Assembly: GCA_964035545.1 (NCBI GenBank) | Contig: OZ037766.1 | Coordinates: 32,044,773 to 32,108,772 of the forward strand | Direction: 5' to 3' | Length of the DNA: 64,000 nt | Source of the DNA: Bugula neritina | Lineage: Eukaryota; Animalia; Bryozoa | Shown: positions 6,833-41,164 of the stretch, one piece after another | Layout of the letters: every line of letters starts with the position of its first letter | Position numbering within the stretch: position 1 is the first letter of the stretch | Notes under the pieces: generated by a model | What the model was told of the DNA's origin: nothing | What the model saw: only the letters and a program-made list of their open reading frames with translations | The model's database searches: none | Position numbers and translations under genes: made by a program

Positions 6833-9800
6833 CTAAACAAATAGGAAAATAAAGTACTTTTTAGTTATTGCATTTAAGTTTGAAATGGAAGATTCCGGCA
6901 AGAAGAAATGGAAGTTTTCAACCAGTTGAGTTGAAGTTGAAGTATTAACTGAATATAGAAAGGAAAAATAGTTAGGGCTAATTAACAATTTTACCTTTTA
7001 TGTACAGTATTGAAAGTTATGAACTATGAAGACATGTATATAAAAGTTGTTGTGCGGCTTTGATCTTTTTTAATAATTATTTACTAAACTCAAGTTATTT
7101 TGAACTATTCTCACTAAACTCTAGTTACAACATAAACTAAAGGCTATTATTACTAATATATGCCTTCTTTCCAAGTATACATAAAGTTTAGAGCAGATTA
7201 ACTAAAGTTATGGCATCTAAACTTAAATTTGAATAGAAGCACAATATATAATTAATCATACTAGAAAACTACACTTACTAGTTGTAACTTCTTTGGCCTC
7301 CTGGGTCTGGTTGTCATCCTTGTTGGTAACTACCGGAGATTCTGCTCCATCCAGAGCTGGTGCTGAAGGTGCTGAGTTGTACCTGTCATGAGATGTTCCA
7401 CCGTGATGTCTCCCGTGAGCTGCGGAATATACCGGAATATGCGTATTATACGGCTAGTGTAGTGTCGTGTAGCGTAGCGTAGTGTAGCGTAGCGTAGTGT
7501 AGTGTAGTGTAGTGTAGTGTAGTGTAGTGTAGTGTAGTATTGCAGTATAGCATGGGCAGTGTGGTGTATATAGTATTGTCGGTAAAGTGCTAAACAAGAG
7601 GCTCATACAATAGATGAGGTTATCTGTGTTATCTGCAAGGAACTAGTTTTCTACAATACCAATACCAATAAAACATAACCGCACACTTTAAACATGCATC
7701 AAATGGTTAGTATAATAATTGATTATATGTAGTATGTCTTTCTGTAGTTGCTGTCAACAGTGAAACTGATATGGAAGAAACATGGAAGAGAGATGGAAAT
7801 AGAGTAAAGAAAAAGAAGAAGAAACTGAAACAACTTGCAGTAGACATAACTTCCCAGAATTGCGTCTGCTGTCAAACATTGTAACAGATGTATCCAGCAT
7901 CTTCACCGTAGAAAATTATTCCAGCTAATTATTTTATTGAGTTTCCGTAACTTTATTACTTGGTTTTTGATTAGCAACTTAAAGGGTTTATTCCTTAAGT
8001 CTGCTGTAATATAATATCTTTATTCCTGCATGCACCAGCTTTTCAATTTTATATAGGATGATATTATATGTTAAGTCAATTATACTTATTGTACTGCAAC
8101 TATGGTGCTTCTCCCTGCACAGTTATAATCAATTGCTGCTCCGCATAATAATTTATTTGCTACCAACGACCATATTGTTATAAAACTACTATACTACCGC
8201 TGTGTTCTTAGGAAATTACTACCGCCATGCTGCAATACCCTGTCTCACCTCCCCCATGATGCATTGGCGCTGGTCCCAAATACCTCTTGTACGGCAGCGC
8301 AGGAGAGTGGAGGTCTGAGAGCTCATTGGCTGCGTGAGTCAGCTCCTGGTCATCTGCAGAGTTTATCTGCAGAAAAGAGACACTTCTCGCTATTCCCAGC
8401 TGTATCAAGAAGCTGTCTTGACTTGTGTCCAGATGCTCACTTTCTGCTGCTGCCGTCATGCCATGACTCATCATGTTGTTTCTCTGGTGATGTCTTCGCT
8501 GCTTTGTTCTTTTCCTCCGTGATGCATTTTTGTTTTTATTCCTTCCCATGATTCAATTTTCATAGAATTTTAAAACTTTTAAAAGCTAAAATTTCTTGGA
8601 AAGCTGAGATTACATTCGAAAGCTATAAATACCAATGCCTGTGCTAGTAGCTCGTGAGTTGCAACTCCGATGACAAAATGTGCCTGATAAATCGATAGCA
8701 CTTTGCTGAATTAAATCCACAAGAACCAGTAAAACTTAATGACTTTTCTCTAGTAGAAACTGAATAAGTTTAAGTTTTTGTCACAATGTACTGGTCTATT
8801 GGTTAGTTGCAATCATACGCAGATACAATGGAACAACTTAGGTGATGTAATGCTAAGTGTTTTTAATTATAAAAACTTTTTATTTTCAAATCATTGACAG
8901 ATTTTCATCAACTGCAAATGTGACATTGAAAGCCAACTGTCTATAGTATTTCTAGAGGTGGCCTATCATTGATTTTTGTATAAGGTGGCATGTTGTTATA
9001 GTGATTTTATGTCATAAGAGGCCCATGGATGAACAAGGATGAACAAGTTGTCTCTATGCAACTTACAAGCAATCTATGCTATTAGAAATTATTCTAGTTT
9101 TTAATTTAAAACAAAAAACAATTTGCTGACTACAAAGTTTAATTTAGTAAGTAGAGTGCTATACTAACATCTAAAACTGGTATACTTTGTGGAAGTTAGA
9201 CATAAACATAGTGTGGAGAGGCAGTGCAGTACATATAGCATATCGTCTGCTACTTGCACACGAAACTAAATGAGGCAAAGAATAATCAATATAAATAGAA
9301 TATTTAGGTGCTGCAACTGCAGGCGATAGTTTCACACCTTGCTCTGCAAGGGATAGTCACTCAGATGCAGGCTTTCTAACCAGCACCTGATTCAAGAGTG
9401 GCTGTCGGTATGTTTTTACTCTCCCTAAATAGGAGCTAGGCGAAATGCATTCCCAATTGAGTGAAATCTTAAACTATTTTCTGTAACTAGCTCTCCCTAA
9501 AGCCCTGGATGAAACCTATTTTTCACAAATGACTCGCAAATTCAACTTGACGTGCAAATTATAGATTTCGCTATAGCTGAAAGCTCAAAATGTTATATTA
9601 TTATTTTAAGAAATTAGTTTTGGAGACATAGGAAGGCTGGTTCAATCTTTCAAAGTAAACTAGAGCTAAAACTGCCTCAAATATTCCTGGCCAGCTGCAA
9701 GTATAGCATTCACAATACACAATACTTTACATAAAATATATTATAGTGCATACAGATTTAAAATATTCTAAATGCTTTTGTTTATTTGCTTTCTTAAACT

Positions 9801-12800
9801 TCAACATCCCAAGATGAATGATAATTATAAATCCACACATGCAGTGGAATGAACTGCAGAACAGAGATAGGTTTAGTGCCTTTTTGTACAGTTGGCTATA
9901 TAATATATATAGTGTATTAGACAGTTTTATACGTCAAAGATGCGAAAGAAGAAACCTTAATGACAGGAGTGGATAAACGTTTTATGTAAGTTTCGTGGTA
10001 AGTTATCAAACAGGTGTTCAGCAACTTGCTTATAGGCAACTACAATATTTATAGTCATGTGATGTGAACATTTTGCTCTAAAAAATAAACAACACACCAT
10101 TTCTGTGCACTGAAATAAAAATAATGGTTAATTTGAACTGGGTGGAATAATTTTCATTCTATTCTCAAGAGATTCAACTGCTTATTGGAATAATTTATAA
10201 AACCAACGGATCTATTAAATACAGCTAATAAATATTGATACAATTACATGTTATATAACACAAATTCCCACATTACTTGATTAAAAAGTACCAACATCAC
10301 TGTTGAATTAGAACTCTCTCTATGGGCAGAGTTTGTTTTGCATATTTATTTAATTGTTTTTTTGAGATTCAGGTTTTTTGTTAGCAGCTGAAAAACATTC
10401 AGAAAACAAGCTGAAAAGATATAATAATATAAATAAATTAACTTCTAGTATAATATCCATAGTAAATTTCATTACAGTATTAAATTAGTAAGCTGTTATA
10501 AAATTTCTTTCAGTCCCACCTTTTCCTTTAAAAATATTTCAGTTGGTCTCCATGAATGCAAAATTCTTAACAAAGTAAAATAAATATATTTCATTGTTTG
10601 GCTTGCGACTGTTAGTTTGTAATAAGTATTCCTAAACTTGTAAACAATATCTTGATGAGAACTGTAAAACATGTGTATAAACACATCACACACCAACTAT
10701 ACAGAATATGTTGACACCTATGACACATTGACACATATAGCATGTGTCACTTGTGACATATCACCACATGTGTGACATTGTGGCACATGTCACACCATGA
10801 AGTAAGGCAAAAAATAGTAGACCAGTTTCTAACTGAAACTGATTACCTGCAGATGGGACGTTACTTTCATCCCCCTCTTCCGCAACGTCAGATGAAAGAC
10901 AGGCTAAAGCACTAACCTTAGCCCCGCCATAGAACCTTTCCATATACATAGCACTGTGCTCAAAAGTATACGTACCTACCCCACCACCCAGCTTAGAGCG
11001 GTGAAGATGTTTCTGTGCGTTGTTCCGCATGATGGCAGAATATTAAAGTGTCGTCTGCTTGTTTTGCTCTTCCTTAGCAATTCTCCAGTCCGACTCTTCT
11101 TATTCCCTGATGATTAGTGTCACTCAACTCAGTATCACCAGCTATTCATAGCTGACAAAATTGCATAATAACTCTCTTGTTATTCTTTTTCCTTTAGGAG
11201 CTAAAGAAACCTGAGACGTCTTTCAACTCTTTTGCAATGCTGTAAAGACGTATGAATTAACGTGGAGGTGAATTCCAGAGAGAGGCTGGCATATGCTCTG
11301 TTTTCTTCTTTATTTATTTTTCAGCTAATGACTTTAATATTGAGATGTTCCTCAAATTCACGCTGTGTTGTAAATTCCACTCTTACGTTCTCTAAGCAGC
11401 TGCAATGTTCGATTCAACTTACATGGAGAGAGTTACTGCAGAGGTTTTCCTTCAAACAAGTCATAAAAGCATTTGATGTGCTCTATTGACACGATTGTTG
11501 TGATTTGATAAATTTTCGATATCCTATTTATCAGACGTTTATTCAACTTCCCTCGTGAAACAGAAACCAACAAGAGAAATGGCTTCGATTGCTAAACACA
11601 CGAGAGCTTTATTGATTTTTCTCAACACTAAAGGAGGGGCAAATACAGATAATTTAGTTTGCACAGTATACGGCTTACCTCACTAGACTGGAAATGTAAT
11701 TAATATTGGTGTGTTTGACAATTAATGTATTGATACAGATAAAGGGCAAATCAATTAGTAGCAATGTAAAAATAGGCGCATTGGGTGTTGATGCTATATT
11801 GTGATATATCAGCTCTGCATTATTACAGTATTTATACCTGTGTTATTGTAGTATTTACACCTGCAGACTACTATTTATCAATGAATAGAACTAATTGCAG
11901 TGAGTGCTACTGACATTTGCTTAAATTAGCTCTTTCGTCAACTTGAATATAGCCTGGGATTTCGTTATACGAGTTGAAGTTTCATTGAATGTTGCAAGTA
12001 AATTGAGCACATCTCTTGCAGCGATAGCCTCTCATAAGTGCATGTAGACATGCATATTTTTTAGTATAAGTTGTACGGTTGATGAAACACTTGCAATAAA
12101 AGTTGCATTATTATAAGTTTCCATGTATCATTCAACCCATGGAAACCGGCAAGTCGCTCTCCTTCCCCATGTATACATGCAACTCTATATGTAGGGTAGT
12201 TTTATGTCTGACATAAGAAAATAATAAAATAAAATATAGATATACATACTTCTTAGCAGTAAAAGGAGTAGCTAGTTACTGGGCATATTTTCAGTTCTAA
12301 ATGATACTGTAACTATACATAACACTCACAACAAATGAAAGCAGCTACCTGGGCTTGTTATTAAGCAACCTCTACACATCCTGCATGTGCTCTGGAGCAG
12401 ACTCTGTCACAGGAATAAATCTGTGACATTATTACTCTGAATGATAAATTGAGTATAGAGCTGAAACTATACAAGTTTCTGTAAGATCTAACAAAATATT
12501 GGTCAACTCGACTACAAGCCGATGGCTCCCAAAAACAGTCTATGACTGCTTTAAAAATTTTCTAACCCAGCTAACTCTAACCTACATGACATTATGAGCT
12601 TTGTGAAAAGATTTACTAACATTTGATCTCTTATATAAATTGTTTTGCTTTTTTTATGCATTTTGATATGAAGATATATTATTTAAAACATTGTGTTTTT
12701 ATTCTTATGTGAATCGGAAGTTTTATATATTATATTGTTTTAAATCAACTCTGAGCTGTTGAATCCATATGCAATCAGCATAGAGCTGAATAGAGTAAAT

Positions 12801-15800
12801 TATTAAAATACTTAATAAATGAGTTTAAAAGGTCAATGCTATGCAATTTTCCATATGCTAAACACATAATTTAGTAAATTCGGAAATGATGACTTAGAAA
12901 TCCAATAGTTCCCATGTGTGCTATTAATAGCTCTAGAGGATAATTCAACTTCACTATTGCATGTGCTTCTAAGAGAAAATAAGGAAACGCTATGCAATAA
13001 ATGCGGCCTCTTACTTTAACATTACAGGACGCAGTAAACTCTGTTGACAAATTATTAGCGTGTCAGCAAATGAGTGAGATATAGATTTTCTATGAAGGTA
13101 TAGATTCTAGCTTGTGATGTATGTTGTAGCAAAGAGAGAGTACTGAACGACACTATCAGCTAGCATAAATTTTATAAAAATAAAAAAAAAGTTATTATTT
13201 TATATTATGGAGCAGTAAGCAATTGACAATGTAGTGCTGGTGATGTTGGAGATGATAGCATGTAGAAATATTAGCCAGTTGTTAGACTAAGAAGTGTGTG
13301 ATGATACAGTAGTTGTTGGCTATGGAGTGTGTGGCTATACAACAGCTGTTAGACTAGGTAAAGTGTGGCAATACAGTAGCTAACCTACTTACTGTATATG
13401 TGGTGCTGAAGCTAAACTTACAGGCAAGGAGAATGTGTGTTAATCTCTCAAAGCAGTCAGCATCTGTTAGACTGAGAATCTTGTTGTATCTCTGTAGAGA
13501 TGCGGGTAGCTCAATATCCGGCCCAACTAGTAGTATAACCTTTTGCCTTCTTTCTTCCTAAATACAACAGTTGCTAGGATATAGTATAATATTTCTCTTT
13601 GTATGTAACATTTGCAATATCTGCTTTAATTCTTTCAAAACAAAACTAATGAATGAATCAGCTGTTGGGAGTTATCACCTCTGGCATGACGTGCTGTACT
13701 GCACTCTCGTAGTTGGCGTAGTCACTCTCCATGAACTCCTGTGTACAGTGTAACACCGTCCTCCTACTCAACCCCATGGCTAACATCAGATTCTGCGTGG
13801 CATTCAGATCTGTCTTGAAGTCTTTCTCAGATGTCAGAACTTTCAGGTCATTTGGACTAGACAACCATATGGTGTATATAGAATATCAAATTATATATAT
13901 AATATATTATATTATAGAATAGTATATTATATAATATATTATACTATAGAATAGTATATTATATATTATATAATATGCTATTCTATAATATAATATATTA
14001 TATAATATATTATATAATAGTATAATATATTATATAATATTACTACTACACAACGATATGGTGTATCTACAGAATATTATGTTGATAGCAAACATGCACA
14101 CAAGTATGTTGTATCAAATTCACTGTTTCATGCAATATTAGATATGATAAACATGAAACCTTTTCACACGAAAGAGTTGATCAAAGTCTTGATATATTTT
14201 AACATAAAATGTAACAAGTTACTGCTGTTGAATGGTAAGGAAACACAAACAATAGTAGAACTATGTAAGGTTAGAAGAGGTCACTTCAGTTAGTTATGGC
14301 TTGCATTCAACTCCTATATATTAGATATATTTCTCTAGCTTTCTTGAAATATTCATCAGCTTTAGTTGTAAGCTTTATCTAACTTCTTCTGTATTTGCAT
14401 AACGAAAAACCCTGCACCATAAGCTGGATTTACAAAAGTTACACTGAAAACTAGAAGTTATAAAGATAATGCATTAGTGACCTTAAGAGAACACAACTCT
14501 GAAATTGATTGTTGCAACAGATGAATGAAATCCAGCTTACTCTTCATGTAGCTAATCACCAACATAGAACTACATTTCATATTCTAATATTTGACGAAGC
14601 CGCCACATTGCCATCATGGCATGAGAATTTTGAATTTTAAACAAAAAACTTGCAATTTGATCAGGTGGTATGGCTGAATGCTATTATGGCGCAGCAGTTT
14701 TCTAAATTTATCAGCTGACTAGCTAATCATTTCCTGTCGTGAATATTTTGTCCAATCACAGCTTGTATTTTATATCAGTTAATGTTATTACCCAATCACA
14801 AGCTGTGTTCTATATCAGCTAATATGATTATCCAATCACAGACTGTATTCTTTATCAGCTAATATTGTCCAATCACAAGCTGTATTCTACATCAGCTAAT
14901 ATTATCCAATCACAGACAGTATTATATATCAGGTAATATTATTTCTCCAAGCCAAACAGCTTATCTACTAATTATTGTATTATGTAATACTTAATTAGTT
15001 GTTAAGGAAGACACAATCAAGTCTTGCAGTCAAACTAATTATAGTAATTATTGCCTGCAGGACTATTTTACTAGACCATGCCATGCAACTATTCCCAGCA
15101 TGCAGTTTAAGCTGGAGAAACCAATTTGTCCTTGGGGTATTCAATCAAACAATAGCAGTAATCAACACGTACTTATAGCCATGCAGAAGCCGAACTTTTT
15201 ATACACCCAGAGCAGAATACTGTATTACTGTGTAGAAAGTGCCATTCAAGGTGTCATTGACAAGTGGAAAACAGTTTTGCAAAAGGTTTTTTTGACATTT
15301 CGATGCATTAGAATTGTATAAAGTTTTGATGAAAGTGGACTACTGGTCCACTAGACAAAACTTACAAACTTACTTTCTATGTGATGCAATCATAATAATG
15401 CTCTATACAACCAACCCTTAGGTCAACGAAAAGCATCAGTACTTGAAATGTAATGAGCACACTAGAACTTAAATTAATTTTATCAAAGGTAAGAAAATCA
15501 TGACTGAAAGGGGTATGTTTTGGAAATCTACAAAATCATAAAGCTTGGAGGACCAAACACACTGAGCAAGATTGATGTGCCTGTCGCATAAACTTTAGAT
15601 CAAGCTAACAACTCTTGCAAGAGTTTTTTCTACGAAATATTTTACTTGTGGTGCTGCATTTTCTATTGAATAAACCAGTGTTTAGTCTTCAAACCGAATT
15701 AAAACTTCCACTGACTATACTGCAGTTCAAATGAAACTAATGGTTAAAATTATCTCTCTATGATTAACCAAGTGTGACACGTGTTGAAAGATTGACTAAA

Positions 15801-18800
15801 TTTTGAGTTTTTATGCATCACTTTAGTTTCGCTCACTGCGTTTGGTCATTTATGATCACACGAAGGGGGTAGCAAAATTATTTTGCATTTCAGCAATCAC
15901 AGAATAAAAAATAATATACAATAAACCATAAGTTGTTTACTTCTTTTCGCTTCTTTTAAATCTGTGGAGACCAAAGAGAAAGCAGAAGAGATGTATTAGT
16001 AAAAGTAACTAATAACCAAACTATATATGAATAGACTAAAGGAATGAGAACTACAGCTAAAACTACTAAAGCTATGGGACGTAAATAGCTGGAGCCTATA
16101 CTGTTGACTATAGGGCTAAAATAGCTGAGCAGATAGTGCAAGGTCTATTATGCACTAAACCAGAGGTTAATTACTGCTACTTGAGTGCAAACATTCTAGT
16201 TTATGTCTTAAAGTGCTGGTCTGCAACTTTTTGTTTTGAGCTCAAGTCAGAAAGCATTAGCTGAAGGTCAAGGTAAACATTGCTGAACACTCAGTAAAAA
16301 TAGACTGGCTACAAATATAACTTAAATAAAATTATAAAATAAAAAAGACTGTGGGAAAATGAAATATCAAATATAAGTTCTTAAAAACAAACAAATTTCA
16401 ACACAAAATATTAAAAGCAGATACTAACTTGCAGTTTCTTGCATAACAATAGTAAATATTGATTACATGAGAATTTATCTGTTCATTAACTAATTCAAGC
16501 AAAAACATTAGAGCCGAGCCAAGTGAAAATCTTTCACTCTGGATCTGCTAGCAATAATGAGTCAGTGTTTAAATTAAACTGTATTTTTCAACAGCTTGCA
16601 GGAGTTACCTGTTTTCTATGATGCTGACGTAATGCTCAATCTGATCCTGGTCCTCCGCTGCCGAAGAGTGGTAGAAGAAGACGTGGTAGTGGTCGTCTGA
16701 TTCAAGAGGAGGAGGCTCGTCAAGGATACCTTGATCCTCTGGCACCTGGGACACATTGTCTTCTGAGTCGCTACCTATAGATGAGTTATAGCAGATGTAA
16801 ACTGCAGATGTATGAGTCATAGCAGGTATAACCTGCAGAAGTCCGATCCATAGTTGCAGAAGTTGGTCAGTATCAATCAGTGAGTCAGAAAATAGATTTC
16901 ATGCATGCATGTATTAACTGTGACAGCAGATAATCTTTGCAGCAGTGTTAACTGAAAGTCACAAAATATGTACAAAAACTAAGTTAGTATCTGGCAATGA
17001 CTTGCAAAAAAGATAGACCACAAAAAGTAAGTCAATAGTTAACAATAAGTCATAGAAAGTTTTAGTAAAAAGTCATTTTTTCAATACTTTGTTTTGCTTC
17101 TGAGTATAACCAAGTGGTTGTGGGAAGCAGACATAGAACAAGTGGCTAGTTGAATGAAGTTTTCTCACCACAACCCAGATGGGCTCAAGACTCGCCAGTT
17201 TCACTATAGCTTTATCTAGTTTATACTGACTTCAGCACTACACATCTAGAGCGCATGATTTTACCTACTCTACACACTACAACTTTTATCATGTAAGTAC
17301 ATCTACACACGTGCATGAAAGTTTGGCACGACAATTTCACACTCTGTAGAAGGCAAATGTGCATACTTTACATCTACACATTTTCTAAACATTGTGGATC
17401 TGTTAGTTACCACAAAACAAATCTCTATTCTAGAACACAGCGTACAGCAAACAGTGTTGTCACCATAGCCAGACAACAAAGAGGCAACACACCAACACGT
17501 GTCTATCTTTTGATTTCATTAGAGGCTATAGTTGTTTTCTTACTGCCACGTACAGATTATACTTTCTATGACAAGCCAGAACTTCTTAAAGAGTCGGTTT
17601 AGTTAAATTTTTTCAGTGACAATTCCTTAGAGTGTAATAGGATATTAAGGTATAGGTGGGAGGGGGGGGGGGGTCTTGGTAGTGCAGGTGGTGTTAGTAA
17701 ATGAACAGTTCAAATCTGTTCATGTGTAGATGTAAATTAAATACAACATTTAAATATTAGCTTCTATCTACCACAGTGTAGGGCCGTGTTACTATAATTG
17801 GAATAATACTAAATATATAATAGAAACCTTCACTTTCGCTTTCCTCTGTTTCTTCTGTAAATGAATAATCAATATGATTTTAGATAGGGCATGCACAAAC
17901 TAGAAAGCACAGGCTAATAAACCAGACCAGACATAGAAAACTTGGTTATGCTGCTGTCAATAAGTAAATAATGCAAAAGGGTATTAACATTTCTGTTTTC
18001 TACTTGTAATTGGAGCTAACAATTTACTTGTCTCAGACTGATTGAATAGAATTAGTCCGACTACTAATCCAGTATTATAAAATTAACTTTTGCAGACAAG
18101 CACTCTAATTAATGACAGAATTGCTAATTAGAGAGGTGGAATAAGTAAATACAGGTAAAATGAGTTGAAATCACCTGATTTCTAGGACAGAAAATGTTAA
18201 TACGTTTGCATTACTTCTACCTTCATTACTTTATATTCCATGCTTTAATGAGACAAAGAGAAAACACACTCAAAACGTTGTCCCTACTATGGTAGGAAAA
18301 ATGTCACACATGGTAGGAAAAGTGTCACACGGGATTGATGTCACAGGACGTTATGCTAGTACACAATGACATATATACATATAAATTACACATAGCTGGT
18401 GTTACTGCTTCTTATTGCACTATTGTCACAGCATTGCTGCTGCTACTGCTACTGCTGCTGCTGCACCAACAAAAATTTTGCCATGCTTTGAAAGCTAAAT
18501 TTTTTATTCGCTTCTTGCTAAACGGGTTGTATGTTACTGCAATAACAAATTACAAACTTATACTTTTTACCAAGACACTTATATTGAAATAATGTAGCCT
18601 GTGAGTTGGACAGTATACTTACAACTCTGGCCATCTCCTTCATACCCCCAATCCAACTGAAAATTGTCCCACGGAGTCTGCTCAATTTGGCTCATATTTG
18701 GCATTCATTCGTAATCCTGACTATTTGAAGTATACTCTTAATGTACTACCCTAGTACACCGACTGAGATATAATACTGATAATACTACTTAATTCTGGCT

Positions 18801-21800
18801 ATAAAATACTCATTAGTGCAGTAATAAAGTATCTCAGCAGAAATCAGCTTCTTAGCAAAAGTCTGCTGTGTAAAGCTGCCGGACACATGGAATTCGTGCT
18901 GTTTTGTACCCTTTGAAAGGAACTCATTGACCTACTAATGCAATTCACTGCTTGGAATAATTTACTTGTAATTCCTTTAAATAAATCACACCGATATCAC
19001 TTGCTATTTCAGCTGAATGGGTTATTGCTCCCAACATCAGCAAAAATGAGTAATTATAGTAAATTATTATATAACAAGTTTGGAGGTTTACCTGAATTTG
19101 AAGAACACCAAAGAGAAGCCCCCTCTCCAAATATTCCACCTAATTGACCCGCTGCCGAGTTGTTAAGGTGCTGACCGTAGAACCCACCCTGCTGCTTCCC
19201 CTGACCCCCAGATGCAGCACTTGAAGGTGCAGCTTTAGCTCCCTTTGTGCCTCCCATAGTATGAGTAGCATTAGTGTTCAGCTAAGTGTCTGATGAAATC
19301 ATCTAACTAAGGTTGTGCTAAAGTAGTATGTTGAAGTCTGGAAACTAAAGTCACTGCTCCAGTCACTGCTCAAGTCACTGCTAGGCTCAATGCTAGAGTT
19401 ACATTTGAAGTTGCGTCTAAGGTCATCTACTGAGGTCGTCTAATAACTCAACTGCTAAACCCAACTGCTAAACCCAACTGCTAAAGTCAACTGCTAAACT
19501 GCACAATGCTCTCAATTGCTTGCTACGCACCTTGCTGTTAACCAAACTCTTAGAAATGCATGTTTGTATTGTGCAGTATGTTTATAATACTGCAATATAT
19601 ATACTATCTTCTAACGTAAAAGAATTTACCTGCAGCGTATATCTATACTCTGAATGAGCTACTTAGATATACTAAATGAGTGGAAGTACTAGTACAGCTT
19701 ATAAACAGCAAATGGTGCCACTTTAAAGAATGGTTCTATTAATAGTAACTAAAGAAGTATCAGGAATAGAAACGTGGTATATATTTTGAAATGTTTAGCA
19801 TTTCATTTGAAAATAATTCATAACAAGTATAGGAATACCCATAATAATAATAATAACAAGTTGCTACTAAGTGTTGTTGATTTGTTCACGATTTATTTAG
19901 ATTCTTCAGTTGTCATGAAAAGTTTTCAACTTGTTAAAAAAGGCCACAGAGCAAGATTATATTTGTATTTTAGTGTTTTCTATTATTTAGTGTGCAGATA
20001 TGGAAATCAACTGCCAGATGTAGAAAACGTGTTGCATGCAAATAGCTTCATTAAGTTACAACACAATGTATACAGATGCTTGTGGATATCTGAACAGGCA
20101 TCTATCATTGTGTGTATGATTATAATAAATAAGAATGGTGAGGGAGCCTCTACCCTTATCGCTCTACCCTGCATTACCCCTTTCTCCTACCCATACCCCT
20201 ATACATCTCCCCTCCTACACTATTACACCCCTCTCTCTGGCAGCAATAAAGGCAGCCATACACTAGATTAGGCAGAACTGCACTAACTGACTGAAGTGTA
20301 AATAATTAGAGCACTAATTCACTTGTATTCTCATCTCCTCAAGTTGCATCAAACATGGCTGATGCAAAGAATGGACGGCCAAACATTTGTGATATTTTAG
20401 CAAATAAAACACATGAAATATATTTTTTTTCAGAAAATTAAAGTATAACATAGAATTATAGCAACTAAATAAATTGCCAGAGCTCTACACTTGTATATAA
20501 AGGCTCGCCCTTGCCTCTTTTATAAGTAAGTATTATGTAAGTACGTAAGTAAGTGTGTAATAGTCACTATATAAGTATTTTAAGCATTATAAATACTTTC
20601 CACATCATAAACTGTATTATTGCAAATTACAAACTTTTTTATTAAAATTAACTTTGCCGAAACGTTGATAGAATAGAAATTTAACCACTGTGTACACACT
20701 ATTTAGCCTGTATACCAGAGATAAGGTTTACTCACTGTAATATGCCCCCATCTTTATTTTCACTGTAGTGGTACTAAGTCCATGGTTAGAATACTGTAGC
20801 TACAACAGTGCTCTTGTAAAGCCTTCCTTAGGCAGAATAACTCTTCGAAATACAAACTGCATGTTTTTGAAATTTAGGCCAGTTATTACACAGCTTCTGG
20901 AGTTTATGTAAATCCTGGCTAAACCTACACACCTGTAGAGTATAACTAGGAGTTTACCTGTAGAGTATAACCAGGAGTTTACCTGTAGACACTGAGTTTT
21001 ATAATATAGTTTATCTATAACCAGTAAGTACCCTTTACATCAATAGAAACATGTATAAACACTTGATCTAGTGATCGTGTAGAGTACAATAATATGTTAA
21101 TATTATTCATGTAATTTTATATACATTCTGATTATGAAGGGCACTGTTACGGATATTTTAAGTAGTCTTATGTGCTTGACTGTAGCAGCTTATCGACTTT
21201 TTAGTTGGGAAAGACAAAATGCCAGTAATTACTGTAACCAATAACTGCTTATTGTAACAGATGTATTATGCTTACTGTAAAAAATATATGCTTACTGTAA
21301 CAGATATATGCTTACTGTAACAGATATCTGCTTATTGTAACAAATATACGCTTACTGCAACTTACGTGTATATGCAAACTAGTCAGTAGATGGAGAAAAA
21401 GTTGATGTAAGACTTGACTAAGTACCTGTCTATTTTCACTTATAAATACTGAATTATAGTTTAATCTCTTAATTGACTATTGGGACAAAGTTTATTAATA
21501 TTTTAATATGACAAAATAAACTAGCAGCGGCAGCAGCAGTAGTGAAGGCAGCGGCAGCAACAGGCTACAGCTAGACATTATGGTAACACAATGTAACAGA
21601 TTAAAGCAAACAAAGATGTTGTTAAAAAAGGAAACGGCAACATTAATTAGGCTAGACCTTCAGAGATATAAGTTAGACCTGGGGGATATATAAGTAAGAC
21701 CTGGGGGATATATAAGTAAGACCTGGGGGATATATAAGTAAGTCCTGGGGAGATACATGTATAAGAAAGAGCAAAAGAGCACAATGACACCCAAAGGCAT

Positions 21801-24800
21801 TTATAGCTCAGCATAATGCATATTAGAGCATGAATTTTATTACATAAATAGCAAGGTAGGTTTAGAGGAAATAATACAGATTGTTAAGGAAACTTTAGCT
21901 GAACTGAAGAAAAGCGATGATACCTGCACCGTGAGCTGCAAAACAGTTCAATAACTCCATGTGTTACCCGAAACTAGCCAACTTATAATGTAAATATGCA
22001 GTATAGGCCAACAATTATCTGTATTTATCGACTTAACTATTTTTCCACAAAAGTAAGTTGCTAATTTTGGTTATATTCATTTATTTTTATAGCACAAAAA
22101 ATTCAAATAATCCCTAACTTTAAGTAATTGTTTGTGTGTGAATAATTTTGATATAGTAACTTCATTTAGCAACTAAATTCATACAGACCTTCCTCAAAAT
22201 CTTCATCGTCATAGAATTCATCTTCTATGAAAGGATTTTCCTCCATATCCTCGTCAAACTCATACATGTCAGCTCCCAGAGCACCTGCAACCACATGACA
22301 AGTTAGAGAAACATGCCATATAGTGACGCATTGCAGTGTGAAATTAGGAGTTGTGCACCTTTATGTATTTGATACAGTTTTCACTCATAAAATGTCCATA
22401 CAACTAGAAGTATGGAGTTGTGTTCTATCTATTAGTGATGGAAATTTTAGTTTTGCGTGCATTGAGGTAGGGTTGGATAGGCAGTGTCATTAGAAACACA
22501 CAGAGTTTACAGAAAAAGAGGAAACTATAAAACTGTTAGAAAATCTCAAATAATTCAGCTGTGAAACTTGAATTTAAACAAGATTCTTTTAAATATCTCA
22601 TTTCAAACATAAGAATCACAGCAAATTATAATACTATAAAAAATAAATATCTTAAAAATTGAGTTTCAACATCATAGAGCAATATAAATCTTTTTTAAAT
22701 GGTGTTTATAAGTAATTATTAATTGATTTATTTATTTATTGATCGTTGGGCAAAATAAATTAAAATTTGCCTTCATCTTTTATGAATTAGTGTTTAGCTA
22801 CGATTTGATTTTATGTGGCATGAATGTGCAGTGAATAAGGTGATGGGTTTGCAGGGCAGTAAGACTGCCCTTTCTACTGACTGAAAGATTTAGGGCTACT
22901 GTATGATGAATTATTGTTGCAGAATGTGCAAGTATCGAGTAAATTTGGGTTGGAAAATTAAATGAGACTCAAAATGATAAAAGTAGTACTTCATACCAAA
23001 TGGATCTGCAATAAATACGACAGATTCTGCGTTAGACAAAGATAAGACAAAAGCACATACAAAGCTGAAACATGATAATATTATGCAAATGACTCATTTC
23101 TTTACTAAACTTACATTAAATATTATATTTCATAAAATATTTAAGAAGGTTATGTGGGATAAAGCTACACATTTTGTTTGACAAGTCCATAATGCATGAT
23201 ATAAAAGAAAATACAAATATGTATACTCCTTTGGATTATTTTTTCTCGCTGATATACAATATTGACATATATCTATGCCAGCCAACAGTATTAAGCCTAC
23301 ATGTACCAATTTGATGTGTGTTACAAAATTGAGCATACCACTTTCATCTAAAATAAACAAAACACTGCAACATCTAGTACCTGTGAAAGTGAAACTATTA
23401 GTCTGCAACATCTAGTACCTGTGAAAGTGAAACTATTAGAGCTTTTGAAGAACTGAAGCTATCATATTGAGAACTTAGCTTAAGGTAACTTAAGTCTAGT
23501 GAACATGAATTATGTATGTTGTCTGAAAAAATAAGAGCTTTTTAGACAAAATTAACATAATAATATATTAACAATTGCTATACATAACTTAACTAAACAT
23601 AAACCTACCAAAGAAATATTCACTTTTACTTTTTGTATAGTAATGAAGCAATTAAATTGATGGAATAATCTAGAAAATAAAATGTTCACAGTACAACCCC
23701 AAATATTTGCTTATACACAAATGCTCTCTCAAACCACTTTCTACAGTTTTGTTTAGTAAGCTGGAAGGAACCCTTACAAATAGCATCACTATTCTATGAC
23801 AAAGTGCAATATAGAGTGCACACGCATGCCTTGGTATCTTCAAAGGATTTGTCTAGTCTAGCACTTTTGACCAATTTGTAACTTCATTCACAAAAACGAT
23901 TCAGAGAAAAATTGAAATTTACAAACAGGTTCAATGCTAAAAGCTTCTCAACAGTTTAAAAGCTACTGTCTTTATTAGAAATATTTTAGACTTGTGATAA
24001 TTTAATTTGTAAATTTACAAGTATCCCCATATTAAGCAAAATACTTAAATTCAATTATAAATAGGAGAGAATAGTGAGGCATGCACGGGCATTGAACTAG
24101 CACCAGAAGAGGCAGTCACTATATCGCAATACAGTAGATAACAAGCTTATCATTGCAAAGAAGTGAAAATAGAAGCACAATAATGCGATATAACAAATGA
24201 ACTGCAGCTGAAAACTTGCTTCAGGTAGATTTTGCAAATGCTAAATCAAAAGTTGGCAATTGCGAAAATCAAATCAAATTTTGTCGCAGAAATTGAAGCC
24301 ATCATAATCAACCTTACCAAAGTTCCTCTCGTCTTCCATGTAACAGGTAAACGGGTCAAAGTAGTCCCCATCTGATTTAGTTAAAGAGTATAAGAAATAT
24401 GTTACAATACAGGGGAAGGAGATCACTACACCACTGGGGGGGGGGGGGAGGGGGGACACCAGTAAAAGGGAGGATAACTCAAAAACAATAGTCAAGTTAA
24501 AGGCGGTAAGCTTCCAGGTTATTTATTACATTTGAGCAAAAGTTTGCATGCTTTTCAACTGTTTTATCAGCATTTTATCCAATTTCTTATACGAAAACAC
24601 TACAAAAATGTAAGTAAAAGTGGTCATATTAGGTGTCTTGGACTTGCCCAGACTTGCCCGCGAGCGTGCCCTCCGTGTCCTATTCTGACGTGGGGATGGC
24701 AAAATAGCCCTATTGTAGCGTGAGTTTATATCGCGTAAAGTTATTAAGAAGCGGGTTTGTCACAGATTCTCGTTAATCGTAGTTCAAATCACATGAATGT

Positions 24801-27800
24801 TACTCTTCGGGCGGCTACTAATAACTAACGTTAGCTACACAACATCAAGAAAGGTAACTAATTTGACTGTTTTCAAATGGACTATTCCATTTCGCTAGTT
24901 TGTAACTTGCTGTAAATCACAAAATAATTATTTTCCCTATTTTAATTTCAATTATCATGTCGACCACACTACCAGAAAATTACTCTTAAATATGCAGTAA
25001 ATGATGATTTTCAACCGTTTTGTGATGAATTATAGGTTAGTAGTTGTCTACGTAAAACCAAGTTTTAAAATTTGTAACTAAATCAGTGAAACTGAATCAC
25101 AGTATCAGTATGAGTATGACTATGAGTATGAGTATCACTAGTCTATGTCTATGACTCTCACTCTAAGTCTATGACTATCGCCTATTGGTGAACTATTATT
25201 AATAATATTCAATGGTTATATTTATTAATACTATTATCAGTCATAATGATAATCATATGACAGTATGAGTATGAGTATGTTAATGTTACGGAGCAGAATC
25301 AGTTTCGAAACTAATACTTATAATATTAGTTATAACTATAAGTATAAGTTATACCAATAGCTATATTTATATTAATATAAATATTTATATTCATAGTAAT
25401 ACTAATAACAAATGTAAAATTATTATGTTAATAGTTATACTTGTAAGTTATAATATAAAACAAACGACACAAGTATTAATTTGAACTGCTGGTCTTAAAA
25501 TAAAAAGTAATATAAATAATAATATAAATAATAGAATATAAATTATAATAATTTAATTATACTAATACTAATAGCAATACTTATACAGTAATATAATTAT
25601 AATAAATTTATAAAACTTAAACAACTTTAAATTTAAGGAACAACTTTAAATACAAACAAAGATAATATTAAATAATTATAATCATAATGATCATAACAAT
25701 AAATATAATTATGATTCCAATAATTATCAATATATTATATAATATTTAAATTATTTTAATTTATAATTATAATCATAAATTTTAGTTATAGTGAATAAAT
25801 TCAATTTGACATAACTATAATATTATAAAGCAGTCAGCCTATCTCTAATGCTGATTGAAATTCAGATTGTTATGACTGTATCATTATTCACTAACTCTAA
25901 GAGTAAGTGGCTACAATTATTAGTATCAATGTTGTGTTAGAGTACTATACCCATTGGAATTTTGATATATCCATTATATTTACAACTCTGCCTGTTACAG
26001 CTATTAATAAATTGAACCAAAATACCAACAGTGCCTAATCATCGCCTTATTTATAAAATAATCACAATCATAATGCTCAAGTTAATAGATTGGAAATTAT
26101 TGAAAATTATGTTGATGCCAATATAAATATGACATTGTATGCATCCAAGTAGTGATGTTGTAATATATCTTGGAAGATAATTACATTATAATAAGAGTTA
26201 AATTCCTCTAAGTAACTTTTTTGCAATTATTCCTTAGAATAACTATAACTTATACTCTTGACATTTAATAGCGCATTAGTTTTAGATTGAGCTACTAATT
26301 GTATTTATTGCATGTGAAAGTTAGTTATTCTCCGCCAGCTGCATGAATGTGACTGGTAAATTTTGTAACCTTTGGCAGTAATAACTTTGTAGCATAAATT
26401 AGACACATTTTTATGAAAATACATAATTTTAATGCTATAGCTGCTAGTAATTCTAATGGGTGTAATAATATTACTTTCACCAGCATTAATTTTTACTTTG
26501 TTCATGCTTCATAAAGCATTTTCTAAATTCTTTTTTTAATAAATATACATATAATGTGCTGAATAGATTACATATGTTGGGGTTCTTCCTATACTGCAGC
26601 TCAGCCTACACTCCCCGCCACAAATGTTCCTAAACTACTAGCTTCATCAGGATACAGATTGATGGAGCTGTATTGATAAAAACTTCTCTTTTTAGCAGTA
26701 GAGGCATCATGAAAAAAAAGGCAAGTATTTTACTCAATAAGAATTCGGTTTTTTACTTCTACAAATTTGATAGCCTACACGATTCTATTTAAATGGAAAC
26801 TGGTCTGACATAATGTGTCTGCAATTTATTAGTTATAATATAGTAAATACTATGCAGGCCTATAGATCAAATGGCTCAAAAAAAATTAAATAAAACATTA
26901 CACAATGCTGTATTTATTAGCAATGTAATACTTAGCAACTAATTTCACATTATTATTGTTTGCAAAGTTTCATACATCTACATAATTATGTTTGTTCAAT
27001 TCAGTGTTCTGAAGTAGAAGGTTCCAACAGCAGGGAAAAGCCTTGAACAAGATATTATGTTCTATTTCTCCAACTCATTTTAACTTTGCTGGTCAGTTCA
27101 TTGTGTATCTGGAGCATAGTTTTGTATTTTCAAGTAGTCCATCAGATACCTTTGTAGATAGTAAAGATTAAAATGCTTGTGCAATGATGTCCATAATGTT
27201 GAACCGATTTATTGAAACTAAAACTGTTCTTAATTATAACAAAACTTGACAATCTTTACATAGAGAATAATGTCCTATAATCTATCTTCATTGTAAACAA
27301 AATTAGAAAGTTCCACACCAGCAAATTGTTTATCATCATCTGTAGGTGGAAGACGCGTGCACTCAGTTATAAAGGCAAGCTGACAGTGGTTTTCTTTGCC
27401 TTCTATGAAGATTTGGAAAGAGCCAGAAAATTAATACTCTATAACTGCAAAACCATGTTGTAGTGTTTTGTGTTATTGATTGAATCATCTAAAAGAAAAA
27501 TTGTTGTATCATTATAATTTTACTGTTAATGAATTAGCAAATCTACTTATCTTGGTAAATATATTCAAGAACAAATACTATAGTGTAACTCAGTTTTGGT
27601 TATGTGTATGCTCCTTAAGCGAATTTACAGCAGATATCAAACTATATATTAGAGACTGATAAAGGAATTAAATTTAAGCTAACCATGATGATGTAAATAG
27701 CTGTTGTATGTGACTTCGAGAACTCTGCTGGCCATGTCAGTTCAAATACACCAGGGTGATCTGTTACGAATTTCATGTCATTATTGAAATTCAGCTTTTT

Positions 27801-30800
27801 CAAGTGCCTCTTCACAACTCTGGCAGCATTCTGACTGCTCCTTAGCTTTCTGCGCCTGAAATTTCTTCTACTTGCACCATTCTTCTATTGGTGGAATGTT
27901 AGCCTATAACAAACAGGTGTACCAAAGCTAAAAAAATATCTAATTCACTGCACTAGGATATTATTCAACTCATTTAAATTTAATATATAGCAGTAAAACA
28001 ATCACATAATTGTTTTTATTTTATCAGCTTTACTTTACAAAGCTGAACCATATAATTTAGTAACTTGTCACCATAATAAACTTTGTACAACATACAAATT
28101 GAAAACCTGATGTGATTGCTTTTTTAATAGAATATACATCAAAAACATGTTACTTTGATAAACGTGTTTATAATAAAAGTATTAAACCAGTTTGAAAAAA
28201 TTATTTTGTTATATAAGGGATCACAAAACTACATCATTTTAGACCTGTAGCTCAATGTTCCTCAAGCAACGGGCTGCTATGACTAATTAATTTTCTATCA
28301 TTGCATTTGATTGTTCTACTCATAGTGTATTGGCGAGTTAAAATTATTGGTAATTTAATGTATATTTTAGCTACCTCTGTACAATCAATGTCATAGTAAT
28401 ATCAATTAGGTTTTAAATTTCACTGAGTTTATAGTAAATTACTGCAACCGTTACATAACATTTGGCTAGTTCTCTAGTTCATTAAATAACCATACGAACT
28501 TAAATTTACAACATGACAAAACACACAAAGCAAAATTAAAATAAGCATATTATGAACCAATGTAAATGATAAGCGATAATGCTGTTATATAACATAAATT
28601 ATCAAATTGAAATAGTTATTATTACTATTAGTATTACTATCATTATAACAACTATAACTATTATTAGTATTACTATTACTATTAGCAAATTAGTAGTAAA
28701 AAATGAGTAGAGTTCAACATATACAATCTAGCTTACTATAAAAGTAGAAACAGAACTTTTAAAACTATCATCTGCATCATTATCAGAACTATGAGTAATA
28801 CTAGTAGTTGTACTAATAGTAATACTAATTATTAATACTAATAGTATCACTATGAGTATGAGACTTGGGCTGGCAGTGATTATCACTATCAGTATCAGCA
28901 TCGTCATAGTCAAAAGTTACAAGAATTAGAAGCCATATTCATATTCATAGTAATAGTCAATCACTGATTGAGTTAATGTCATAGTGATACTCATACTCAT
29001 AATTAATTTATACGATACTCATAGTCATACTCATAGTGATAGTGATACTTTACCGTGAATTTAATAATAATTTTAATTTAATATTATTATTATCATTGTT
29101 GCTAATATTATGTCTTACTCTTAGTCTAACAGCAGCTCTATGAAGAAGTTAAACATAACTGATAACAAAACAAATTTAAAAAATAATACTGCAACAATCA
29201 ATATAATGTATATCAATATGCTAGCAACCTAATTTTCAGCTCACTTCATTAACTTTCCGTGCAGTATTGTGAATGGTGATGAAATAAATTCATTAATGGT
29301 GACCTTGACATCTTCGTCCAAATGCCTTTCACGTCAAGCCCCGAACCAATTTGTAAAAATTTTGGATTTTTTACTTTTGATTATTTTTTACGAAAAGAGC
29401 TTCAAAATAAATTTAAAAAAAGTGAGCTGTTGTCCACATGAAAAGAAATATATGAGCTAATTTTCTAAATTCAGGAAGTTACCAGAGGGTCACAATATTT
29501 TTTTTAAAAAATCTTTATTTTTACGACAAGCTCTATATATTAATATAGAAAAAAAGAAGACAACTCTTTTTTCAGATTTTTTATGTGCCACGGTCACGTC
29601 AATATCAGTGCTATTAACACATATATTTTAATTCATTTTTTCTGGTATATTGAGTTGAGATTTTTTGTATATATTTTGTGAATGCAACTAAAAAAGTATG
29701 ATCTTTTAATTAACAGTAATTGATTTTATCAAAATAACCTGGATGCTTACGATGTTTAATAAACAGTAAAACACGAGTTATAATCACAAGCAGTTAATAT
29801 AACTTATAGTGCATGGGGAGACAAAAGTAGAAATTGTGAAGTGCGTAGCCATCCTATATTAGTAGTATTAGTCATCAAGTGAAACAAGGTATCACAACTC
29901 TCAATAAATGTATCACACAAGAGGTTACAAAATATTATTTTCAAATATACAATGAATAATCAAGAGATGCTAAGTTTATAAAATAAACTAAATGATGCAT
30001 CACTAATTGGCTAATTTAAATAAAAAAAATTCAAGAAGTTTAAAATGAAAACTGATGGAATCGCATGATTGGTCATTTCGAAATCTGCTGTTTCAATGGC
30101 AGCATTTGCAAATGGTAATTTCGAATAATTTCACTCAAACCATTTCTCAATATAAAACAATTGATGCAATTATAATGTAATTTCGAAAAGATTTAATTGT
30201 TGGCATCTGATTGAAACACTTGACATAGTTGAATGGTTGTTAAAGTCTGTAGTAGTTTGATTGTCAAGTAGCTATCAATTGGCACTATCAGACGTGCATG
30301 TGACATAGGTTGTTACTCAAACACTACAATACATGTACTCATATATTATAGTCACATAAAGAAACTGTATGTAGTTGAATCATTTAAGTAAAACCAAAAC
30401 GAGGTGTAGCATCAGGATATATGCTTACATTTAAGTAGCAGTCAGCATGCCTTACTTTAAAAATATATTCACCTGGCTACTTTCCTTTATATTAAAACTG
30501 ACTAAGATGTAAAATTGGTTGACATTTGTGAGTGGTAAACCAACTAGTTGGGAAAAAACTTTTTTTAACTAAAATGAGCATATGTAATTGGTTTCTAAAA
30601 TAATTTGTCTAGAAGAGAACCAAGAAGAAAGACTTGTTGAGTGAGAAGATTGCAGTAGAGCAAAGATTAGTAGCAGGGCATAAAAATGGCAGAGATGTTG
30701 AGTGTGTCGCACAAGGAAGGGATAGCTAATTCTAACTCTAAACTGTTAGTAAAACTGAAGCTAAATCTGCTATTAAAGAAAGTCACTAGAACTAGAAATA

Positions 30801-30942
30801 TATGATATACATATATAATACAGATACTATATATAGACAAGGGAATAGTACTACCTCCAGCCACTCCTGCCTGTAGGAATCGTCTTCGCATGTGGTAATG
30901 ATCCATTCGTCTCCCTGGTTTGCCCCCTGTAGCTTTTCCTCC
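2571..30942 (-). CDS. Constant exons of a TIR-domain + TMEM268-like membrane protein: 30855-30942, 22189-22284, 17828-17854, 16609-16774, 13679-13856, 13422-13557, 8249-8353, 7279-7419, 6657-6832, 6124-6240, 4911-5090, 4452-4598, 3517-3618, 2571-2810
   Basis: Every exon has an AG acceptor and a GT donor, and phases chain without stops: GGKATGGKPGRRMDHYHMRRRFLQAGVAG|GALGADMYEFDEDMEENPFIEDEFYDDEDFEE|EETEESESE|GSDSED...YHVFFYHSS...IIEN|SPNDLKVLTSEKDF...SRRTVLHCTQEFMESDYANYE...|EERRQKVILLVGPDIELP...|...|VPESLMKRGLQ|VTQGEFQEIL...TM...TM...|KYRIKIEEFNKRF...KLKLYFIYYNFEECQ|...MVTFM*. The TIR-to-8353 junction is inferred from phase only. Confidence 0.82.
7455..7540. repeat. (TAGTG)n pentanucleotide microsatellite
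   Basis: Visible tandem gtagt/gtagc units just upstream of the 7419 acceptor. Confidence 0.9.
8441..8549 (-). CDS. Internal alternative first exon V20 (phase 1, TIR-less isoform): MGRNKNKNASRRKRTKQRRHHQRNNMMSHGMTAAAE
   Basis: ATCATGG start, donor GAAA|GTGAGC, then an 87-nt stop-free intron to the acceptor at 8353. Confidence 0.68.
10847..11030 (-). CDS. Internal alternative first exon V19 (phase 1, TIR-less isoform): MRNNAQKHLHRSKLGGGVGTYTFEH...ESNVPSA
   Basis: ATCATG start, 61 codons + 1 nt, donor GCAG|GTAATC; lies downstream of all TIR exons. Confidence 0.65.
13422..16774 (-). other. TIR domain-encoding exons (16609-16774, 13679-13856, 13422-13557)
   Basis: YHVFFYHSS (box1, cf. YDVFISYS), KDF (cf. 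RDF), SRRTVL...EFMESDYANYE (cf. SRKTILVLSPNFLESEWCQYE), VILL...LPASLQRY (cf. IP..L), in the correct order and spacing. Confidence 0.82.
14751..14940. repeat. ~39-bp degenerate tandem repeat, each unit beginning CCAATCACA (5 copies)
   Basis: ccaatcaca..ctgtattxtatatcagctaat repeated. Confidence 0.8.
18623..18704 (-). CDS. Alternative first exon V18 (phase 1): MPNMSQIEQTPWDNFQLDWGYEGDGQS
   Basis: 27 codons + 1 nt, donor T|GTAAGT. Confidence 0.55.
19092..19257 (-). CDS. Alternative first exon V17 (phase 1): MGGTKGAKAAPSSAASGGQGKQQGGFYGQHLNNSAAGQLGGIFGEGASLWCSSNS
   Basis: GC-rich ORF, 55 codons + 1 nt, donor TCAG|GTAAAC. Confidence 0.68.
20736..20751 (-). CDS. Candidate alternative first exon V16 (phase 1): MGAYY
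   Basis: AAGATGG GGGCATATTACA|GTGAGT. Confidence 0.5.
21660..21752. repeat. 22-bp tandem repeat (acctgggggatatataagtaag) x ~4
   Basis: Direct inspection. Confidence 0.85.
21924..21960 (-). CDS. Candidate first exon V15 (phase 1): MELLNCFAAHGA, or a 12-nt phase 1-1 microexon at 21924-21935
   Basis: ATG...TTTTGCAG CTCACGGTGCAG|GTATCA; both readings preserve frame. Confidence 0.35.
24318..24339 (-). CDS. Alternative first exon V14 (phase 1, would join 22284): MEDERNF(G)
   Basis: ATG GAA GAC GAG AGG AAC TTT G|GTAAGG. Confidence 0.55.
24501..29755. mobile_element. Decayed Kolobok-like DNA transposon
   Basis: TTAA on both flanks (24497-24500, 29756-29759). Imperfect 24-bp terminal inverted repeats AGGCGGTAAGCTTCCAGGTTATTT / ACATCGTAAGCATCCAGGTTATTT (19/24). 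Internal remnants of a KolX/P2X7-C-terminus-like gene. Confidence 0.75.
27310..27903 (-). pseudogene. Degenerate KolX (P2X7 intracellular-domain-like) gene of the Kolobok element
   Basis: Fragments EEWCK*KKFQAQKAKEQSECCQS, KFVTDHPG and FCSYRVLIFWLFPNLHRRQRKPLSACLYN* follow the WCxCxxC...ECxCC / ITxHPGF / YRxFxxW..L....RxPLPxC motif order, with stops and frameshifts. Confidence 0.7.
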
Positions 30943-33498: not shown

Positions 33499-33645
33499 CC
33501 CTGGCTTTCGTGCATTCTTATATTTTTTCTCATTGAGCCTACGACGTTGTAGACCTCTTTTATCTGGGCGTCTCGTAGCTTTCCTTGTGTGATTTATTCT
33601 CATTAACTTTGCCCCTGACCTTCTGTTGCCCGCTATTCGCCTCAT
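33499..33645 (-). CDS. Alternative first exon V13 (phase 0): MRRIAGNRRSGAKLMRINHTRKATRRPDKRGLQRRRLNEKKYKNARKPG
   Basis: 49 codons, donor GGG|GTAGGC. Confidence 0.68.
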
Positions 33646-37242: not shown

Positions 37243-37332
37243 CGTCTTGTGGGCTGCGCGGTTCTTCTTGTGTCCATGTTTGTGCTTAGAGTGACTTTTC
37301 TTGTGCGTAGTCTTGTGACGCCTGTGGCTCAT
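37243..37332 (-). CDS. Alternative first exon V11 (phase 0): MSHRRHKTTHKKSHSKHKHGHKKNRAAHKT
   Basis: 30 codons, donor ACG|GTGAGT. Confidence 0.78.
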
Positions 37333-40814: not shown

Positions 40815-40817
<3 letters not shown>

Positions 40818-40896
<79 letters not shown>

Positions 40897-41046: not shown

Positions 41047-41126
<80 letters not shown>

Positions 41127-41152: not shown

Positions 41153-41164
41153 TATAGCCGCTAC

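Follow-up and report, generated by a model that had tools for sequence, protein, structure and literature searches.

We analyzed a 64,000-nucleotide (nt) stretch of a Bugula neritina (Bryozoa) genome assembly (contig OZ037766.1, positions 32,044,773 to 32,108,772; hereafter the window, whose own coordinates are used throughout). Its minus strand is predicted to carry the B. neritina orthologue of a bryozoan gene for a two-pass membrane protein that combines a TIR domain with a DUF4481/TMEM268-like part. As read from the exons, the product would begin with a basic tag and an acidic stretch, followed by the TIR domain; a disordered linker would then lead into a TMEM268-like part that has two hydrophobic segments. 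This order would place a predicted cytosolic TIR domain in the N-terminal half and the DUF4481/TMEM268-like region in the C-terminal half. Within the long intron that follows the last TIR exon and precedes the linker exon, two putative internal first exons, 11030-10847 and the exon beginning at 8549, are conserved from their start codons onward in a second bryozoan, Watersipora subatra, and TIR-less isoforms consisting of a tag and the membrane half are a well-supported prediction (Table 1). The explanation that we favor as a whole, with moderate confidence, is a multi-promoter TIR-membrane gene with two real internal starts and a set of phase-1 cassette exons, the remaining candidate starts in this region being either chance frames or young exons.

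The identity of the gene became apparent from several searches, in which the exons of the window were queried singly. When the window exons were scanned against Pfam in this way, the TIR profile matched none of them, and weak matches were obtained to DUF4481 (exon 4598-4431, 18.7 bits alone) and to DctQ (PF04290; the transmembrane exon segment 5135-4884). A phmmer search of 1.8 billion proteins with TIR exon 2 gave weak matches, at about E 1e-4, to TLR-like TIR domains, and it also recovered two spliced relatives. One, P0007, comes from a 2.2-kb contig at JGI and is collinear with the window exon chain minus the introns; the other, P0011, comes from Logan and has a frame that stays open to the 5´ end of its contig, making it uninformative about a short non-basic start. 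A word search with P0007 then returned three further proteins: P0019, the W. subatra orthologue; P0018 (EB796_016842), a paralogue on contig C7 (chromosome 7); and P0020 (EB796_007747), which is the window gene itself in the 2020 B. neritina assembly, in a model built by AUGUSTUS with transcriptome hints (PMC7576161). The gathering score of 25 for PF14800 (DUF4481) was exceeded by P0019 (29.1 bits), P0011 (28.1 bits) and P0018 (26.4 bits). Among the TIR families considered (PF13676/PF01582), scores for TIR_2 fell slightly under the cut-off of 28 in the paralogue P0018 (26.7 bits), with P0007 at 19.6 bits. A profile made from the TIR part of five family members matched the solved TIR chains of TLR2, TLR15, TLR6 and TLR1 over ~105-115 residues, the best match being to the TLR2 TIR (E 4.7e-5), and alignment by eye placed a Glu (NYES / NFES) where the catalytic Glu of NADase-type TIRs is expected. 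The chain of tag, shared basic exon, acidic stretch, TIR and membrane part agrees with the database models of both the orthologue and the paralogue. This upholds the canonical isoform class (tag, basic linker, acidic stretch, TIR and transmembrane part) of an earlier note on this stretch, which had proposed seven tiered alternative first exons ending in phase 1 and four classes of isoforms. The gene extends to about 2574, well past the last exon given in that note.

Candidate exons were evaluated against the 81-kb W. subatra gene (locus L012), the chromosome 7 paralogue locus and a contig of the 2020 B. neritina assembly (L013). L012 was taken to be the orthologous locus because each of its exons is closer to the window than the corresponding paralogue exon is. 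No intron of the window could be aligned with W. subatra; only exons and one short element align. The L013 contig matched the window in blast segments that were 73-89% identical and contained many gaps, with a substitution rate of 9.8% across ungapped intron columns. It thus behaves like a separate B. neritina lineage, giving the comparison some power. Islands of raw identity between the window and L013 did not discriminate, as there were 154 of them at 94% or more; substitution-rate and empirical-window tests were used instead. Contigs from closer bryozoan relatives are 1.2-3.8 kb long and end short of the candidate exons.

The frame that opens at 11030 matched a W. subatra frame located, as in the window, downstream of TIR exon 3 and ahead of the linker exon, with 31/55 identities that start at the Met of both species. 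The match had an E of 1e-13 when the whole locus was searched, 1.6e-18 for the syntenic interval and 4e-18 pairwise, and a phase-1 AAG/GT donor is available to the W. subatra frame. Between the B. neritina lineages, the exon differs by four substitutions in 182 nt (2.2%, compared with the 9.8% of introns) and a net in-frame indel. Outside the exons, the element at 11713-11758 is the only sequence that matches the W. subatra locus at the nucleotide level (80% over 46 nt). In W. subatra it occupies an equivalent position, ~0.6 kb ahead of the ATG, and in B. neritina it is inside a block that is 96% identical between lineages. Conservation that begins at the Met, at a syntenic position, agrees with the use of 10847 as a first-exon donor in the earlier note, and these data suggest that 11030-10847 is a real internal first exon with its own putative control region. 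A look-up in the ESM Atlas with this exon gave nothing usable.

Lower in the same intron, a second W. subatra frame begins MAKNKKKNAHKRRAKQRRK where the window has MGRNKNKNASRRKRTKQRR, the alignment again running from the Met of both. This match scored 27.7 bits, which was reached by none of 300 composition-matched shuffles (best 27.3 bits). Downstream of the donor at 8441 is an interval (8440-8354) for which the GT and AG are found at exactly homologous codon positions in W. subatra, likewise 87 nt apart, and whose translations in the two species are similar (E 0.002, composition-adjusted). The interval is either an optional intron that is coding when retained or plain coding sequence. The 8549 start exon is predicted to end in phase 1 either way, at 8441 or at 8249, and is probably a real first exon, with the common start codon and the common GT and AG positions speaking for a first exon here, again as proposed previously. 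The segment 8353-8249 is absent from the full-length W. subatra model. A TIR-bearing form that uses the 8353 acceptor is therefore unsupported, as that model joins TIR exon 3 straight to the linker exon.

We propose that the gene is transcribed from several promoters, with the 11030-10847 and 8549 exons starting transcripts from inside the long intron already described, upstream of the linker exon. The 8549 exon would end at 8441, or at 8249 when the 87-nt interval is kept. The linker acceptor at 7419, which reads CAG/CTCAYG in both species, appears to be common to TIR exon 3 and to the internal start exons. Splicing of the internal start exons to 7419 would give a TIR-less protein composed of a short N-terminal tag and the membrane half, as in the class of tag plus transmembrane part that had been listed among the four, and the conservation of both start exons at syntenic W. 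subatra places argues for this class. Such forms could represent the ancestral TMEM268-like product, or they could modulate the TIR-bearing form by way of the shared membrane half.

An improbable alternative is that there are no internal starts, the 11030 and 8549 frames being internal cassettes or part of something else and the protein being started only by an array of exons farther upstream. The W. subatra and GenBank models do omit both exons. The two alignments nevertheless begin exactly at the Met in both species, and the one conserved non-coding element is positioned ~0.6-0.7 kb upstream of the 11030 start in both. In addition, the window has a stop four codons before the ATG at 11030, and exon 11030 therefore cannot be entered in frame from far upstream.

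Several other observations weigh against the explanation with two internal starts and cassettes. No B. neritina transcript-derived proteins were found in the databases, and the chromosome 7 paralogue is without any of the extra exons, be they internal starts or cassettes. The basic head of exon 8549 is barely above the shuffles (27.7 vs 27.3 bits), and the interval 8440-8354 could be plain coding sequence with a coincidental GT and AG. For the exon at 24371-24318, discussed below, the interpretation as a cassette draws on ~10 conserved codons, and a start at 24339 with a conserved leader could still be the alternative. Single-exon word searches for transcript fragments, made for the 16774 junction and for exon 19257, returned only genomic open reading frames that run into introns.

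We consider it quite improbable that the locus comprises a TIR gene and, downstream of it, a separate TMEM268-like gene whose first exons are 11030 and 8549, with the fusion arising by read-through or as an annotation artefact. DUF4481 proteins without a TIR do exist, for example human TMEM268 (PMC6748091), and the internal start exons together with the upstream conserved element resemble a promoter region of their own. P0007 and P0011, however, each hold the TIR, the linker and the membrane half in one open frame, and in both species the TIR exon 3 donor (13422) agrees in phase with the acceptor at 7419. In the paralogue (C7:14430204-14449100), the distance from TIR exon 3 to the homologue of exon 6832, where the membrane half begins, is only 1.3 kb, and no internal start is present. 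Its shared and acidic exons also form a single exon, with no intron between them.

Table 1. Features of the TIR-membrane gene and of candidate exons in the window
Feature	Position	Strand	Length and phase	Remarks
Upstream start exon MPSHARRMRMSKRH...	41233-41165	minus		Second exon ends at 37243; W. subatra synteny
Upstream start frame ...MEGGRSYTVRRRQVKVIRKNRRKNNKRKTEEAS	about 35493 onward	minus		W. subatra synteny
Upstream start exon ...AKLMRINHTRKATRRPDKRGLQRRRLNEKKYKNARK	ending near 33505	minus		W. subatra synteny; also matches the C7 paralogue
Shared basic exon (GGKATGGKPGRRMDHYHMRRRFLQAGVAG)	30855..30942	minus	88 nt, phase 0 to 1	AG and GT present; kept in W. subatra and the paralogue
Putative cassette exon (GDYFDPFTCYMEDERNF)	24318..24371	minus	54 nt, phase 1-1	Includes the "MEDERNF" ATG at 24339
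Main acidic exon	22189..22284	minus	96 nt, phase 1-1	In models P0019 and P0020
Micro-exon A-HGA	21924..21935	minus	12 nt, phase 1-1	Internal exon in P0020
Candidate first exon MGAYY	20736..20751	minus	16 nt	Unsupported; too short to test
Candidate first exon, Gly/Ala/Ser-rich	19092..19257	minus	55 codons + 1 nt	
Candidate first exon	18623..18704	minus		Not supported
Acidic mini-exon ETEESESE	17828..17854	minus	27 nt, phase 1-1	Internal in GenBank model P0020
Acidic stretch and first TIR exon	16609..16774	minus	Acceptor phase 1, donor phase 2	
Second TIR exon	13679..13856	minus	Phase 2 to 0	
Third TIR exon	13422..13557	minus	Phase 0 to 1	W. subatra donor also phase 1
Conserved non-coding element	11713..11758	minus		Two TAATTG motifs; ~0.7 kb upstream of exon 11030
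Putative internal first exon MRNNAQKHL...	10847..11030	minus	61 codons + 1 nt, phase-1 donor	
Putative basic internal first exon (MGRNKNKNASRRKRTKQRR...)	8441..8549	minus	Phase-1 donor at 8441	
GT...AG interval	8354..8440	minus	87 nt, in frame	Stop-free, coding-like
Segment following the interval	8249..8353	minus	105 nt, phase 1-1, phase-1 donor	Tail of the 8549 start exon or separate exon
Linker exon	7279..7419	minus	141 nt, phase 1-1	Kept in W. subatra and used in the W. subatra model
First exon of the membrane (DUF4481/TMEM268-like) half	6657..6832	minus	Phase 1 to 0	Conserved

Among the exons of the main chain, the shared basic exon converts phase 0 to phase 1 as had been stated, and its W. 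subatra counterpart is likewise 88 nt long. The main acidic exon matched W. subatra with an E of 6e-9 (1.7e-8 in a restricted search). The acidic mini-exon at 17854-17828 shows one synonymous change between the B. neritina lineages and is without a separate counterpart in W. subatra, and the exon carrying the start of the TIR domain (16774-16609) is conserved from its acceptor onward in both W. subatra and the paralogue.

The splice sites on which the array of seven first exons was built are all present on the minus strand. A GT directly follows each of the eight listed donors (30855, 24318, 21924, 20736, 19092, 18623, 10847 and 8441), and an AG directly precedes the listed acceptors 22284, 17854, 16774, 8353 and 7419, as well as 6832. 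The frames from the candidate ATGs (24339, 21960, 20751, 19257, 18704, 11030 and 8549) all end one base into a codon, and to this extent the statement that all candidates end in phase 1 is correct. The agreement is, however, a selection effect. We scanned the minus strand from 8249 to 30854 (22.6 kb) for any ATG frame of at least five codons that ends at a GT and graded the GTs with a generic donor score. At a score of at least 4 there were 36 phase-1, 35 phase-0 and 17 phase-2 candidates; the corresponding numbers were 17, 16 and 8 at a score of at least 6, and 7, 8 and 1 at a score of at least 8. That all end in phase 1 thus describes the choice made by the earlier reader and not the sequence. 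ATG exons with donors phase-matched to a common acceptor are present, but with phase-0 candidates equally common in the same stretch they do not discriminate, and the phase switch, which had been put forward as the strongest internal evidence for the array, carries no weight. Between the shared exon and exon 6832, all introns outside the TIR block for which exon ends can be fixed are in phase 1. An additional start exon in this region can thus stay in frame only by ending in phase 1, and the "switch" follows from the reading frame and is not evidence. The small disordered exons 24371-24318, 22284-22189, 21935-21924, 17854-17828 and 7419-7279 can likewise be skipped in frame, as their flanking splice sites are in phase 1. 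More generally, phase agreement among hand-picked ATG...GT frames is no evidence, and it was synteny with the orthologue that separated real exons from chance ones.

The full model of seven tiered phase-1 first exons and four isoform classes is very improbable. In its favor, the sites and phases all exist, two of the seven exons are conserved as starts and a third shows unusual conservation within the species complex. Against it, phase-0 candidates are as frequent, two of its ATGs (21960 and 18704) are lost in the other B. neritina lineage, conservation extends upstream of the MEDERNF ATG to an acceptor, and 21935-21924 is internal in the GenBank model.

The MEDERNF frame is better explained as part of a cassette. 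The exon at 24371-24318 has a syntenic W. subatra counterpart, FDPFKCYMDDPSNF, with a score of 28.9 bits compared with at most 20.8 in 300 shuffles, and the donor, TTTG/GTAAGG, is identical in the two species. Third-base synonymous changes (GAC/GAT, CCG/CCA) continue upstream of the ATG at 24339 as far as an AG that follows a pyrimidine-rich tract in both species, and no other ATG is present in this frame up to the conserved AG. Between the B. neritina lineages there is a single change in the 54 nt, and it is synonymous. Such coding-type conservation past the ATG speaks against MEDERNF as a start, and we interpret the exon as a phase 1-1 cassette that is located between the shared and acidic exons and measures 63 nt in W. 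subatra. The proposed class of isoforms that begins with MEDERNF and continues with the acidic stretch, TIR and transmembrane part is accordingly better read as inclusion of this putative cassette.

Two other candidates fared poorly in the comparison with L013. The frame at 21960-21924 has no ATG in L013 and is disrupted by a 10-nt indel. Its final 12 nt are nevertheless retained with their AG and GT and one synonymous change, and they form an internal exon in EB796_007747, not a first exon; a strict pattern search for this micro-exon gave no match in W. subatra or the paralogue. For the candidate at 18704-18623, the first ATG is CTG in L013, and the eight substitutions in 82 nt equal the intron rate, so that 18623 is not upheld as a first-exon donor. 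The ATG and GT of the candidate at 20751 are kept between the lineages, a comparison that has no power over 16 nt, and no orthologue match was found for it. The 20751 and 18704 frames are probably chance frames.

The candidate at 19257-19092 differs from these. It shows four substitutions and no gaps in 166 nt relative to L013 (2.4%; P 0.0002 against the intron rate of 9.8%), and only 1% of 166-nt intron windows, found at three other loci, are as conserved. The low-substitution block starts at the ATG. Some 11 intronic loci have an ATG frame of at least 20 codons, and most are broken in L013, with 19257 intact. The locus is single-copy, searches of W. subatra and the paralogue gave nothing above shuffle noise, and the sole database relative is a genomic open reading frame of B. 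neritina itself. We suggest that 19257-19092 may be a young, lineage-restricted start exon. The proposed class with tag, TIR and transmembrane part and lacking the main acidic exon hangs on this exon alone and is not supported.

The predicted arrangement has parallels in known systems. As in the protocadherin alpha/gamma and UGT1A clusters, several ATG first exons have their own donors and share a common acceptor with compatible phase, and, as in other genes with alternative first exons, some of them are conserved between species. The variable exons in Bugula, however, encode short unrelated tags of 5-100 codons rather than being paralogous exons that encode domains, part of the proposed array consists of putative cassettes or chance frames, and both promoter choice and exclusive use are putative here. 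A second parallel is with deltaN-p63/p73 and delta133-p53, for which an internal start drops an N-terminal signalling domain and keeps the rest, the domain dropped in Bugula being the TIR. N-terminally truncated isoforms often modulate the full-length protein, and MyD88s is a shortened regulator of a TIR pathway that is produced by splicing. Unlike these proteins, the Bugula gene is known here from its sequence, and a regulatory role would follow by analogy.

With respect to TMEM268 itself, the likeness lies in the C-terminal half, which scores above the PF14800 gathering score in the orthologue and the paralogue and has two hydrophobic segments; the bryozoan proteins differ in having a basic tag, an acidic stretch and a TIR domain added at the N terminus. 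In mammals, TMEM268 has been studied for the stabilization of integrin beta4 and CD11b and has not been described with a tag, acidic stretch or TIR (PMC6748091, PMC11169502). Its link to integrin-dependent immune responses adds to the interest of the bryozoan TIR plus DUF4481/TMEM268-like family, which is unstudied. A predicted switch between TIR-bearing and TIR-less forms that is common to two bryozoans with unalignable introns would offer a handle on the regulation of a membrane-bound TIR protein in an invertebrate. A tentative extension, which we think unlikely as a whole, is that cheilostomes in general share a two-tier locus with a variable N-terminus. In it, upstream promoters would swap basic tags on the TIR-TMEM268-like protein, and two conserved internal promoters, these being the original TMEM268-like promoters retained after capture of the TIR, would produce TIR-less forms that pair via the membrane half and tune or block TIR signalling.

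We also noted features elsewhere in the gene. An array of start exons is located upstream of the shared exon (33370-41245, minus strand), and at least three phase-0 start exons there are conserved at syntenic W. subatra places.

Relative to the window, L013 is missing one base of the shared exon, the C after a run of G at 30922, which shifts the frame at the exon start. EB796_007747 copes with the missing base by means of another frame and strings several alternative first exons into one N-terminus. The model is probably incorrect; the lost base reflects either an assembly error or real variation. The intron that follows the shared exon contains a very AT-rich stretch of ~5.2 kb (24500-29756, GC content 0.27-0.31) that L013 lacks, so that the two B. 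neritina lineages differ here by an insertion or deletion.

No Rfam match was found across the window from 6000 to 31500. The same was true for three intronic blocks, 16113-16327, 14934-15123 and 11439-11661, that show exon-level conservation between the lineages, with at most four differences per 166 nt. The first two lie between TIR exons 1 and 2, and the third is upstream of the 11030 start exon. The micro-exon 21924-21935 and the linker exon (7408-7419) have the same seven bases, CTCACGG, after the AG, which may be chance. Finally, the W. subatra model (L012 57007-59427) has an insertion of eight residues, VKKLTRGK, where TIR exons 1 and 2 meet; these residues are lacking in B. neritina and could derive from a micro-exon or an extended donor.

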